From positions 1 through 53,423 of the forward strand of contig LPNZ01010302.1 in assembly GCA_001655205.1 (NCBI GenBank): DNA of 53,423 bases, given 5' to 3'. The notes beneath the pieces are model-generated. The model was given only the letters and a program-made list of their open reading frames with translations. It ran no database searches and was not told the origin of the DNA. Positions 46,933-52,956 of the stretch are shown in pieces. The position numbers and the translations under genes are program-made. Position 1 is the first letter of the stretch. Every line of letters begins with the position of its first letter. This stretch comes from Lenisia limosa (taxonomy: Eukaryota; Protista; Breviatea).

Positions 46933-49900
46933 ATGAGAATATCTCCTCAACAAGGGTGATCCACAAGGGTGACACATTGTCTTCAAAACATAGTACACGA
47001 TATTTATAGGTCTTTTGGAGTATTGATATCATTTTCACGCAACAGATTATACAGTCAAAAGGTGCCTTTTTACACTGTGGTCCCAACATCAACAGCCCTA
47101 CTCGCAAGCATACCGCCTCAGATGGCTGTGGTCTGTGGAGATCTTCAGGTTGCAACTTTGTTGGGCCGCTGTGTTCGCGTCAAATATTGCGCCAAATCGT
47201 ATGTTGGGCGTACATTTGAGAGTCAAATCGTGCCAATCCTTGAAGTAATTCTGTAGGGATTCCTTTGATGTTACAGTGCAAAAATGCGACATAAATATGG
47301 GTCAGATTAGTACAGATTTAGAACATGTGAGTGCTTTTTTTATGAATGGCAAGTCATACTTTAGATACTATCGAGTTGGAATGATGTGGCGTATGTCATC
47401 TCAACCTCGGGTTCTAACGGAACACCAAAAATTGTGGTTGTACCCCGAACAAGTAAGCTTATCTTGATTAACATCACTACACTCATTGTTTGCGTACCAT
47501 GTGTGATGGTAAATCCTACTCTCATATTTCGATTGCGCGAGAGGAACGCTATCCTTCCAATAGTGATCAGTGAAGCTTGTAATTTATGATTATCGCTCTT
47601 CTAACAAGTCAGCTTTTGAAGTGAATATTACGGCCTTGTCCGACGAGCTGAAAAGACTCCCATCAAGCATGCGGAAGCGAATGACTCTGTCCACAAGCCC
47701 CACGCACGACCCAAGCCTGGCTGAGTTCTTTGTCGGTATGAAGCTCAAATGTAGGTTGGATGGGATAAGGCCTCATTGATGTAGCGAGCTTTTTCGTCTG
47801 TCAACACAGCACACACTCCTTAGTGCACCGAATTGCCCAGACCGAGGGCGATATTCTGATGACAACACCGTCCATGGCCCGGAGCCTCTTTAGCCTTGAC
47901 CCGAAATCCCTATCCTCCCTTCGGCTTCTTCTTCTTGGAGGCGAGCCTGTTCCTCATGCCAAAGAGCTTTCAAAATGGAGACTCTCAAAAAAGCTAAAAA
48001 TCATGTCTCTATACGGTAATTATCACGATTCCACCAACATTTTAGGGAGTACTGAACAGTCTATCTGGTCAATGATATGTCATAACCCCCAATTCTCTCA
48101 AAACTCTGCACTTGGTAAACCTCTTAGCGGCGTGTCTTTTGCTGTTATATCTGAACAAAGTAAGTCCTAAGTCTTTTGTCTATTAATTATTTCAGGCCCT
48201 GACACAAGGGTGATACTTGGCAGAGGGGAACTGATTGTCATGTCTCAAGAAACATGGGTAGCTGGCGAGCCGAAGCCTCTGGCATGTCGCCATACTGGGG
48301 ACATTGTCAGCATCTCAAATGGTTTGTTAGCCTCCTTGTCACAACACCAGACCAATCGCTCTCATTTGTCGGACGAAAAGACGGGCTGTGTAAGGTTGCT
48401 GGTCTTCGAGTATCAACTACCGCCATAATCAAGTAAGATGGAGAGATAATTGTGACGTTATAGTTCACTATTAGCAACCCCCGGTATAGAAAACGCCTAT
48501 GTTTTTCCTGGCCAAGATTCTCTGACGTTAGTTCTTCAAACCCATATGACGGAAGGTTTGGAGAAGTTTTGAGAACGCAGGTCACAACATAGGGTGGGTG
48601 CACTGGTCCAAACTGTCGCACTTGGCTCCCCTATTCGCTCAATACAACACACTCAACCCGTACTTCTACTCTTGGAAGCGGTTTCCCCTGACACAAAACT
48701 CAAAAGTTAGAGATAACATGACAGTGTTCGCTCACCTTGCAGATTGACATGGTCAGAATTCAAGAACGGCTTACAGAGCCGGCCCCTCAGACAGAGTCTC
48801 CCTTGAAGATCTTTCAAGACCACCTCACCCTGTCACGTGATATCATTGAGAGTGATATGTGGGTTGGACTAGGAGGCAAATCTCTGCAGGCAATGGCGGC
48901 GGCGGAGCAGGTTTCCCGACAGTTTTCTGTTGATCGCGGTGTTGTTTTGAGTCTTCTCTACACTGTTCCTCTAGTTCAAGCGGCACACCAACTTCTGGCG
49001 TCTTCAAAGTCGACACAGCATATCTATTTGGAGCCTAAGGTATCGTGGTCTCTTGAGAGCAGTAGTGCCAAAGCCGAGCCGGGTCCTTGGTCCTCCCCTT
49101 GTGACATGCAGGAGGTGATGACAATGGTGGCCTCTGATCTGGAGGATGAATTTCCGCGAAAACGCCAAAAGAAGTCCCCAAGTATCGAAGTGAATCAAAC
49201 AGTCCCACCTGTCCCTGGAGCTATAACGGATATTCTCAGCCCCAATGCCACCTTGGTTCCTATTTGGACTGTTAACATGCTGAAGTGCGTTGACGCGCGA
49301 ATTGCTACGTGCGCGCAACAGGTAGCAATGGCATGTCACGGAGGCGCAGTCTGCTCTGTCGCTGACAACCGGCTAGTCTTGAGTGAAGTTCTAAAGGACC
49401 GGGTTGAGGGAGGCGTGGCGTATGGTCCTGGTTGCATGGCTTGTGGCACATCATCAGGATTCCTCCATCTCTTTGGAGGCAACAACTTGGCTGGTCATTT
49501 GCATTCGGTATGGAGCTTATTCTTAATTTTGATATTCATAGAGCTAGCATATGGGCTGTGTATAATCCTTTTTCGTTTATAAGCCATCTAGGAGTACTGT
49601 GGCGGTTCTATCAAAGGGACGCCTTGTTTTCTCCCTTCAGGTATGACGTGTTCGTAATGGAAGCTCGTAAAAAAAGGCATTAAAGTTTGTCATGTTTCTC
49701 ACACTTTCAGGCGATATCCTTGTCCCAACCTACGGCAACGGAGTAGTATTGGTCCGGCCCGGGTCTGATGGGTGGGCTGCCGTTTGGAGGTCCGGCCAAG
49801 AGTCGTGTAAAGCTAGTCCTCTTGTCACCAACGAGGCTTTTGTAGAGGTCTCTCTTGACGGACTAATTGCATGTTTCGATGTTGTTTCTAAGTCGCTTCC

Positions 49901-50589
49901 TTCTCTTCGCTGGAGGTCCACTGTCTCTGTCCCCATTTTTGCAGAGCCAGTTCTTCATAAGGACTTTGTTATTGTCATGACCGTTACTGGTGTTTTAGTA
50001 ACGCTTGAAGTCAAGTCAGGCCGAACTTCTCAGATTCTTGGTTGGTGATAAGCTCTTTGACCGAGGTAGATTTGAATGATGATGTGTTCCACTCGGTCGT
50101 TATTCTGGGTGAAGGTTGGTCATGACATTGGGACCTTTTATGTGTTGTGTATAATTTCAATCAGCTAATTTCCTTGTAGAAATGATAGTTTTCTCCCAAG
50201 CTGGTTCTGTTTTCATTCTCTCTCTTCCAAGTCATGAAGAAGAGGTTGAACTCAAAAGTGTGGTGCAAATGGAGGTATGGAGCCATTGAGATTCCTTATC
50301 CCATCAGAGCTTCGGAGGCTGTGCTGTTGTGGATGGGAGTAATGTTTTGGTACTTTCAACCACTGGGTTCGTTCGCATCCTCAATGTTAAAACAACTGAA
50401 ATTCAAAATGTGGGGGGAGATCAATGAAGAAAGGTATTCATCCCAAACCGAATTTACATTACGCTTGTAACCTAACAGGTTTTATGCCCGGTACTGGGTC
50501 CCACGTTTACGGACCCGGTGTGGTCTGGCTCGGAGTGGGTGATAGGCTCACGTGCAGATAAGGTCTTCGGTTTGGTAGCGATCTCTTGA
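46933..50589 (+). CDS. AASDH: AASDH/ACSF4-like NRPS-type protein (adenylation domain + carrier domain + PQQ-like beta-propeller)
   Basis: A-domain motifs AYVISTSGSNGTPK, SPTHDPSLAEFF, LLLGGEP, YGSTE, HTGD, FVGRKDGLCKVAGLRV, FPLTQNSKID. Carrier motif LGGKSL. Propeller WTVNMLKCVDA, PIFAEP, TFTDPV..IGSRADKVFGL, TGA 50587-50589. The start exon is uncertain. Confidence 0.9.
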
Positions 50590-50858
50590 TCAATGTAACA
50601 TGAACTTTCCAAACGCTGGTGACCTGATTTCCTTTCGTTTCACTGACTGCTGGAGAGAATAGAAGACAAGGGACCGTCTGACATGGAGGAAACGGGTATC
50701 TTCACGGACTTTACGAAGGATCGACTCCTTAATAATCAACACAAAACAAATAATCACTAAATGATATTATGAAATCTCAGGAAACAAAAAAAAAATCCCA
50801 TCCATACAAGAGGGATAGCAGCATGTCTTGGTATAGTCCTTGCTAAGCTCTCCATTGC

Positions 50859-52282
50859 CTATTGTAGTGACAATAACTGAAGAGAAGCACCACCAAAAGC
50901 AAACCGATTGGATCGCTTCATTAATCTGGCTTTGATTTGACAGAACACGGTACTTTGAAATTTCTTTGCTAAAGTGTATCTTTAGCAAGAGAACTTGCAA
51001 AAAAAGATCATGACTCCACCAAGCCCACCAGAAGTATATGAGTCCATCATTGGTGAGTTTGTTGACTGCTGACTGGACAGTGTCTTCATAGCATTTCTGA
51101 GGAAACAATGTCACGTGCTAATCTCCCATTGCATGATATGACAACCGAAATTCCCTCAAACTTGGTCACAATTAGCTCTAGCCTGAATTCGACTATTCTT
51201 GAATATCTCGTCAATGCTGATACCACTTTCAGCCGCGTAGTTTATCACTGTAAACACTTCGGACTCCAAAAGACTCGCCTATCTGTTAGACAACTAAGGT
51301 ACAAACCGCGGATGTATTAGAAATGAGAAGATTGTTCCTCCCATTTTGCTTCTGGAGGAGAGCTTCCATCCACATCGTCAACTCATCTGTGGGGGAACAT
51401 TTGCCTGAAAGAGTCAAACAACCTTGAGAACTTTAAGAATCACCATAAGACTCAATTTGAACGACTACACCATGGAAGTGGATTGGTAGTCCTTTGACCC
51501 ACACTACTGTTCCTGCAACTGTCAGAGCTCAATGGGCTTCCCATTGGTCCATATACTATAGCAATGATACAGCAATGAGAAATAAAAAAAACAGTTGTAT
51601 CCGCCTATTGCGGATTTTCCAAGATTGTCATCAACCCACCAAGTTTTGGAGGTTTTGGCTGGTCGACGTTGACAGAAACACCAGGTGGATGCCAGACAAT
51701 ACATGGCAAAAGACTGGACCCATCATCAACTGCCAACTGTCAGGACTGGTTTAATATGGAAACAACAAAAACAATCAACACTGACTTGTGAAACTCGTAT
51801 TGTTTGTTTTGATGTCTGACATCACAACTACTCCGGATACCTGAGAGCTGGGTAAGCAATTGTATTATACCACTTGCTGATAGCAAGTTAAATCAGATAC
51901 TGACATCTATGATGGAAATACTGTGTTCAATGTGAAAGGATATGCTCAACTATTGTACCGATATTTTCATTGCATCTGTCAGATTAGACCGCTAATAGAG
52001 ACTAAATTGGTTATATTTGAATATTCAGTAATTATTATGCTATGACAAAAGCAGATTCCTCAACACCAGTCCATTCATACCAACAATCTTGGAACTTTTT
52101 TGCCTTGAAATAACACCTGACGGCCTATATCTGTTAACACTCATGTTGCGCAACCTTTTGGATGAATCTGCCGCATTTGGACCGCTTCAGAACAGAAGAG
52201 TCTCAAACACTCCGGTTCTCCTGATCACGAGTTACCAAATTCCCAACTATGACCAACCTAATTTCAAAGGGTAGACCGACAT
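50859..52282 (-). CDS. STN1: CST complex subunit STN1 (OB fold plus winged-helix)
   Basis: Spliced product MSVYPLKLGEPECLRLFCSEAVQM..VLFQGKKVPRLLVSGVVV..FTIDDGSSLLPCIVW..LGTVVWVKG..PTDELTMWMEAL..AVNKLTNDGLIYF resembles the STN1 OB-fold (VDDxTGxIxCxxW) and winged-helix signatures. Introns are mostly 28-65 nt. The last exon is uncertain. Confidence 0.8.
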
Positions 52283-52283
52283 T

Positions 52284-52700
52284 TTATTCTTTCAACAACA
52301 AGAGTTTCCTCTGGACAGTTAGGAATACTTAAGATGAAGGTCATGTCTTAGTAGTTGAGCCCCCCCCCCTCCCACCTTCTTCTCATCTCTTGCGTACTTG
52401 TATGATCCCCACGCCAGAATGCCAACAAAGCCAACAAACAGCGTTGTTCCGAAGACGGCGATGGGCTTGATACGTCCGGCTGCGTCCAAGGGCGAAACCT
52501 ACCCCGTCATGAATTGACTCAACTCAAGCTTCTCGAGAGTGCAGGCTAAAGAATCATCCCCTTACAAAAAGCTCAAAATTGATGAGTTTGAATAAACTGG
52601 TTGCTTCAGGAGACTGCGGTCCGACCAGCTTTCTAAAGAGGTGGTTGGTTAGTGACAATGACAATCCCGACAACAAACACAGATTAACTAACTTGAGCAT
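52284..52700 (-). CDS. SMIM8: SMIM8-like small single-TM protein (74 aa)
   Basis: Exons 52700-52693, 52632-52566, 52498-52376 and 52310-52284 give MLKKLVGPQSPEATSLFKLINFELFVSPLDAAGRIKPIAVFGTTLFVGFVGILAWGSYKYARDEKKRKLLLLKE*. SLFKLINFELFVSP..KPIAVFG resembles the SMIM8/DUF4500 motif LFRAVNPELFIKP.KPVMAFG (recalled, not searched). Confidence 0.75.
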
Positions 52701-52836
52701 TGGTCAACAACAGTTGGGGGGGGGGGNNNNNNNNNNAAACTTTAATACATCAATAATGTGGATGGAGTATACAACCGAAAGAAAGGAAAACAACAGAAAA
52801 ACAAACTGCTGAAAGCGAGGACATTTGATCGATTAT

Positions 52837-52844: not shown

Positions 52845-52956
52845 TGCCCAGAGTGGGGCTCGAACCCACGGCTTTTCGCTGGCTTATCAGAATCCATTGA
52901 AGGATTTCTTTCTCAAGAATATGAGACGAACACTCTACCGACTGAGTTATCCAGGC
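52845..52956 (-). tRNA. tRNA-Met (CAT), elongator type, with a 39-nt intron (52881-52919)
   Basis: GCCTGGA/TCTGGGC acceptor stem, D-arm ACTCAGTCGGTAGAGT, anticodon stem TTCGT/GCGAA with CT-CAT-A|intron|A, T-arm GTGGG-TTCGAGC-CCCAC. Mature length 73 nt. G1:C72 and TTCG exclude the initiator. Confidence 0.95.

Follow-up and report, generated by a model that had tools for sequence, protein, structure and literature searches.

In the intron-dense breviate Lenisia limosa, two open reading frames (ORFs) meet inside one short internal exon, where the stop codon of a small SMIM8-like protein and the start codon of an STN1-like protein are separated by a single nucleotide. An assembled contig of spliced, polyadenylated RNA carries both ORFs, which meet in this internal exon as UAA-A-AUG. 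On balance we lean towards the view that the pair is a true bicistronic mRNA, from which STN1 would be made by leaky scanning, by reinitiation, or by both. The window referred to below is the whole stretch of 53,423 nucleotides that was analysed (contig LPNZ01010302.1, forward strand), and the gene pair lies on its minus strand.

The junction was read directly from the sequence. On the minus strand it runs ..AAA GAA TAA A ATG TCG GTC.., where the TAA occupies 52286-52284, the ATG 52282-52280, and one A, at 52283, separates them (junction 52280..52286, with the frames taken from the spliced model), exactly the layout that the initial annotation had described. The shared exon (52258..52310, 53 nt) is spliced at either end in the RNA contig (joints 52310/52376 and 52219/52257, cut +1). 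Within it, the SMIM8-like ORF ends with its final 8 codons and stop, and after one A the STN1-like ORF opens with the ATG and its first 8 codons. On the upstream side, the last base of SMIM8-like exon 3 is 52376 (phase 0), and the 65-nt GT..AG intron after it (52375-52311) is spliced out; the STN1-like ATG comes 28 nt after the acceptor. On the downstream side, a 37-nt GT..AG intron seen in the RNA contig (52221..52257, minus strand) interrupts an STN1-like codon after its first base (phase 1). An in-frame TGA sits at 52294-52292, 10-12 nt upstream of the STN1-like ATG, as had been claimed. The junctions of the RNA contig likewise agree with the phases proposed earlier, which were 0 for the end of SMIM8 exon 3 and 1 as needed by STN1 exon 2. 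In the spliced model the STN1-like ORF lies in the +1 frame relative to the SMIM8-like ORF and thus there is no simple in-frame fusion, again as first proposed. This two-ORF layout is not a product of chance, because each ORF remains open across RNA-confirmed junctions (3 in the SMIM8-like ORF and 11 in the STN1-like ORF).

The offset between the frames raises the question of a fusion protein made in another way, by programmed +1 frameshifting or by readthrough at GAA-UAA-A. We considered this and rejected it as highly improbable. The second ORF does lie in the appropriate frame and the stop codon is followed by A, as at the AAA-UAA-A sites of the Euplotes type, but the codon before the stop is GAA rather than the slippery AAA, and its tRNA would be unable to re-pair on AAU. 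Plain readthrough would meet a TGA after 21 codons, short of STN1, and a membrane-anchored STN1 makes little biological sense.

Two public runs, and only two, matched this DNA. The first is a polyA RNA library from 2016, labelled metatranscriptomic; the second covers the whole stretch, introns included, and may be the source of the DNA. The contigs of these runs were compared with positions 50000-52715 of the window, leaving out a run of N (52727-52736) and an upstream tRNA gene. The polyA run gave a single minus-strand contig of 1743 nt that spans both ORFs, has 14 GT..AG introns spliced out, and is colinear with the DNA from 72 nt 5' of the SMIM8-like ATG through the STN1-like stop. In order, these introns measure 60, 67, 65, 37, 30, 240, 56, 127, 39, 28, 65, 60, 46 and 80 nt, and all 14 end in AG. 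Even very short GT..AG introns are excised exactly in the contig (51279-51306, 28 nt; 52125-52154, 30 nt; 52221-52257, 37 nt; 51405-51443, 39 nt). By coordinate arithmetic, the 5' end of the contig lies 80 nt before the first donor, and hence 72 nt upstream of the SMIM8-like ATG. The fraction of sampled genomic 31-mers found in the RNA run was 0.24, where 0.253 is expected if fully spliced exons alone are present (327 of 1291 31-mers being wholly exonic). No intron-retaining or unspliced form of the locus was found among the assembled polyA RNA contigs.

Just upstream, at 52716-52736, an assembly gap of 10 N is flanked by an 11-base run of C. The gap falls within the presumed 5' leader of the SMIM8-like transcript, and the true leader and start site are unreadable from the window. 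Further upstream, on the same strand and about 70-150 nt from the 5' end of the contig, lies a tRNA gene (52845-52956) whose anticodon is CAU and whose intron position carries a 41-nt insertion; it was recognized by Rfam (52.3 bits) and missed by ARAGORN.

A contig that spans two genes is in itself no proof of one transcript. This one was assembled from 31-mers, and no such word covers both junctions of the shared exon; as the exon (53 nt) is longer than the word (31 nt), the contig gives no proof of one molecule with both junctions. The same contig runs on into the plus-strand-spliced 3' exons of a convergent neighbour, and is thus able to merge distinct transcripts. One alternative offered at the outset, a single mRNA for both proteins, is therefore borne out to the extent that, at the level of a 31-mer assembly, one spliced polyA contig carries both ORFs.

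The convergent gene occupies about 48737-50589 on the plus strand. By eye, a phosphopantetheine-attachment-like motif precedes beta-propeller-like repeats in its product, which suggests an AASDH-like protein, and the contig confirms its introns of 33, 65 and 69 nt. Its stop codon (50587..50589, plus strand; frame and stop read from the sequence, with plus-strand GT..AG joints in the contig) abuts the STN1-like stop (50592-50590, minus strand) as TGA/TCA, so that the two form the palindrome TGATCA. As 0 nt separate the convergent coding sequences, each 3' UTR must be antisense to coding exons of the other gene. The RNA contig runs through both stops, and the locus is extremely compact.

Could the contig have merged the SMIM8-like and STN1-like genes as well? 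In that case separate, overlapping mRNAs would share 31-mers or longer stretches: the SMIM8 message would be polyadenylated soon after an AATAAA at the junction, and the STN1 message would have a 5' end of its own, either from a start site in or just 5' of the shared exon, or from a leader or alternative exon joined to the acceptor at 52310. We regard this as possible but on the unlikely side. In its favour, linkage is known at the contig level alone, and the contig has also taken in the convergent neighbour. The SMIM8-like stop lies within this hexamer (52283..52288, minus strand), a candidate poly(A) signal by its sequence, and the STN1-like ATG follows it directly; no other AATAAA, and no ATTAAA, occurs in the modelled mRNA of 1237 nt, and the intron that follows is 68% G+T. 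Because assemblers usually clip short tips, the contig would show neither a spliced leader joined at 52310 nor a poly(A) tail that follows AATAAA, even if they existed. Against separate messages, the assembled RNA shows the donor of SMIM8 exon 3 spliced in cis to the acceptor at 52311, and no contig contains intron 3 or an unspliced border at 52258. A promoter would need to fit within the 65-nt intron or within a coding exon. The other introns of the gene are as rich in G+T, which weakens the argument for a downstream element, and a spliced leader is neither known nor shown for Lenisia limosa. Across the window, the minus strand has 41 copies of AATAAA and the plus strand 12, with about 13 expected per strand; the minus-strand excess probably reflects the T-rich introns of mostly plus-strand genes.

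The arrangement can also be set beside the spliced-leader operons of nematodes, tunicates and kinetoplastids. As in those operons, genes on the same strand have almost no spacer between them, and an acceptor lies shortly 5' of the downstream start. In the operons, however, the trans-splice acceptor lies beyond the end and the polyadenylation site of the upstream gene, whereas here the SMIM8-like stop (52286-52284) lies past the only acceptor, 24 nt downstream of it, and this acceptor (52311) is used in cis. Our literature search listed no paper on a spliced leader or on polycistrons in Lenisia limosa.

The upstream ORF encodes 74 residues (52284..52700, minus strand). Its coding sequence is divided among four exons (52700-52693, 52632-52566, 52498-52376 and 52310-52284, with the TAA in the fourth); the spliced model follows the GT..AG junctions of the RNA contig. 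With exon 2 alone as query, the Pfam family DUF4500 (PF14937) was matched over 19 residues with an E-value of 0.0063. At 16.9 bits, where the cut-off is 27, this query fell short of the curated SMIM8/DUF4500 threshold. The protein has a single hydrophobic helix at residues 38-56, the best 19-residue window, with a mean hydropathy of 1.96. This helix directly follows the DUF4500-matched motif, as expected for the small, single-helix SMIM8 protein. A word-based homologue search with the SMIM8-like exon gave no match, and an Atlas search with the transmembrane exon returned generic small membrane proteins only. Taken from its sequence, the product would be a small membrane protein with one helix that weakly resembles SMIM8/DUF4500. 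The name SMIM8, as first given, is thus weaker than was implied, the Pfam match being sub-threshold, though the size and the single helix fit. The protein collection searched contains the 294-aa ORF of this locus and lacks the 74-aa ORF; annotation pipelines that keep the longest ORF per transcript overlooked the upstream protein.

The downstream ORF encodes 294 residues in 12 coding exons (50590..52282, minus strand; stop TGA at 50592-50590), again following the RNA contig. Its introns are of 37, 30, 240, 56, 127, 39, 28, 65, 60, 46 and 80 nt. A 45-residue query from the last exon matched exactly one protein among 1.84 billion (P0001, 294 aa). P0001 is identical to the spliced model, including the start, and derives from EukProt, where it is a 'complete' ORF from Trinity/TransDecoder. 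As it comes from an independent Trinity assembly, it provides a second line of support for the start codon and the exon chain. An internal ATG near 52116 was also considered as the start, and was ruled out by the 30-nt intron (52154-52125) in the RNA contig.

STN1 has an N-terminal OB fold and two tandem C-terminal winged helices, whereas RPA32 has one winged helix. In P0001, residues 48-108 matched the OB fold of the Pfam tRNA_anti-codon family (E 8e-4, 19.7 bits, below the cut-off of 27), and residues 146-209 gave a sub-threshold, RPA_C-like match (E 0.02). About 85 further residues follow the RPA_C-like region, and are mostly helical in an AF2 model of low confidence; this single-sequence model of P0001 had a pLDDT of 38.8 and was unusable. 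The Pfam models Stn1 and STN1_2 did not match P0001. Among the feature clusters of the Atlas language model, the best two were STN1 (0.95, with 209 shared features, and 0.92), followed by RPA C-terminal clusters (0.92). No sequence homologues of P0001 were found in the protein databases searched or in the PDB, the word-based search returning P0001 itself only, and queries of the PDB with separate exons or halves of the proteins produced no relevant match. From these matches, the 294-aa protein looks like an OB-fold and winged-helix protein of the RPA32/STN1 type. We consider it likely to be STN1-like, with RPA32 as the alternative. Here too the original name was stronger than the data: the nearest feature clusters are those of STN1, yet by sequence the protein could be either STN1 or RPA32.

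How might the second ORF be translated? The SMIM8-like start has the context ccaAUGc (C at -3 and at +4) and the STN1-like start the context aaaAUGu (A at -3), as judged by a yardstick other than the host's own consensus. Two AUGs only precede the STN1-like AUG: the SMIM8-like start, and an AUG at 52386-52384 (gagAUGa). The latter opens a 9-codon upstream ORF (uORF; 52292..52386, minus strand, in the spliced model), which after splicing is in the STN1 frame and ends at the TGA at 52294-52292, its stop lying 9 nt before the STN1-like ATG. Both AUG-bearing upstream frames thus terminate no more than 12 nt from the STN1-like AUG. Per 100 nt, the first cistron has 0.44 AUGs and the second 2.37, a depletion in the first cistron that is not significant (P 0.08 by mononucleotide shuffles and 0.46 by synonymous resampling). 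RNA at the junction was no more structured than shuffled sequences (z from -0.2 to +0.7), and with no excess structure scanning is not hindered there.

The mechanism that we propose for the bicistronic mRNA would run as follows. One spliced, polyadenylated RNA, starting at least 72 nt 5' of the SMIM8-like ATG, would carry both ORFs. Scanning ribosomes would reach the SMIM8-like AUG first and, its context being apparently weak, some would initiate there and others would pass. Those that pass would meet one more AUG within the next 226 nt, that of the 9-codon uORF, and then the STN1 AUG. As the upstream frames stop by the STN1 AUG, every ribosome that initiates upstream would terminate within 12 nt of it. 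Leaky scanning, short-range reinitiation at UAA-A-AUG, or the two together would then yield a small amount of STN1, although reinitiation after an ORF of 74 codons is usually inefficient. How much STN1 is made would depend on SMIM8 expression and be held down by it, and this would fit the known need for STN1 to be scarce.

The SMIM8-like stop is followed by 11 exon junctions, and this bears on the fate of such an RNA. Stop codons followed by exon junctions are the classic trigger for nonsense-mediated decay (NMD), and the bicistronic RNA might be real but unproductive, either a read-through substrate of NMD or a by-product of competition between splicing and polyadenylation, with functional STN1 made from a rare monocistronic form. 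Read-through polycistronic RNAs of Arabidopsis are reported to be NMD targets (PMC9768141). We think this improbable, since the bicistronic form is the only one assembled, both here and probably in the Trinity assembly behind P0001, and because the termination of all upstream-initiated ribosomes so close to the STN1 AUG looks selected for. Under the productive, bicistronic reading, reinitiation beside the SMIM8 stop could spare the mRNA from NMD despite the 11 downstream junctions.

Green algae, fungi, Cryptosporidium and Drosophila are all known to have nuclear bicistronic genes; to our knowledge, no polycistronic nuclear genes have been reported in breviates. The closest parallels that we weighed are in green algae, where hundreds of nuclear bicistronic loci are known, in some of which the stop and start codons overlap (PMC7896298, PMC11291117). 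Their upstream ORFs are small (TOM22, OST4 and REX1S-REX1B are examples), their spacers shrink to 14 nt or give way to overlap, and leaky scanning has been demonstrated by mutation (PMC7896298, PMC11291117). The locus described here resembles them in pairing a small upstream ORF, often one for a membrane protein, with a larger downstream ORF (in the algae on one capped, polyadenylated mRNA), and in having a very short spacer, an apparently weak context at the first AUG, few intervening AUGs and no IRES-like structure. It differs in its breviate host, in the gene pair, and in a junction placed within a 53-nt internal exon between introns. The algal loci are also backed by long reads, proteomics and mutational tests, whereas the Lenisia limosa locus is known from sequence and assembled contigs. 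None of the papers listed in our literature search mentioned SMIM8. The initial annotation had called such coupling rare and this pair unreported; the second part agrees with our search for SMIM8, but the kind is well represented by the hundreds of green-algal loci (PMC7896298, PMC11291117). What would be new here is the lineage, the gene pair and the unusually tight 1-nt junction inside an internal exon, messages with two ORFs being already known from other nuclear genomes.

A second parallel concerns STN1 itself. In both yeast and human, translation of STN1 is repressed by upstream overlapping ORFs, and NMD and reinitiation factors are involved (PMC6089452). In those systems, as would be the case here, translation upstream precedes and damps that of STN1, and a theme of scarce STN1 would be common to all three. 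The upstream ORFs of yeast and human are, however, short and non-conserved and overlap the STN1 start, whereas in Lenisia limosa a protein-like ORF of 74 codons stops 1 nt before a start codon whose product is only probably STN1.

Termination-reinitiation in viruses gives a third point of reference. In calicivirus VP1/VP2 and influenza B M1/BM2 it needs a long first ORF and a TURBS element, in which UGGGA pairs with 18S rRNA. Here too the start is only a few nucleotides from the stop (UAA-A-AUG), and the frame changes between the first ORF and the second. In contrast to the viral systems, the first cistron contains no exact UGGGA, a motif taken from known TURBS and not from the host 18S rRNA, and has only UGGGGA, 64 nt upstream; nor is there any signal of structure, as judged by the z-scores given above.

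With AATAAA placed exactly at the stop codon, SMIM8 mRNAs may mostly end there, which counts against a bicistronic message. In a joint reading, speculative and in our judgement doubtful as a whole, the 53-nt exon would be a decision point between use of the AAUAAA and splicing of the 37-nt intron. Polyadenylation would give an mRNA for SMIM8 only, and splicing an obligate bicistronic mRNA. On the latter, termination-reinitiation at UAA-A-AUG would both yield STN1 and shield the message from NMD. As part of the same doubtful reading, this might be a genome-wide mode in breviates, with DNA-maintenance genes as the downstream cistrons.

If the shared transcript is a working mRNA, a breviate would be added to those eukaryotes in which a single nuclear mRNA is translated into two conserved but unrelated proteins. 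Lenisia limosa is a relative of animals and fungi. If true, the arrangement would also be a third, independent case of upstream damping of STN1 translation, after the overlapping ORFs of yeast and human, and it would support strong selection on STN1 dosage.
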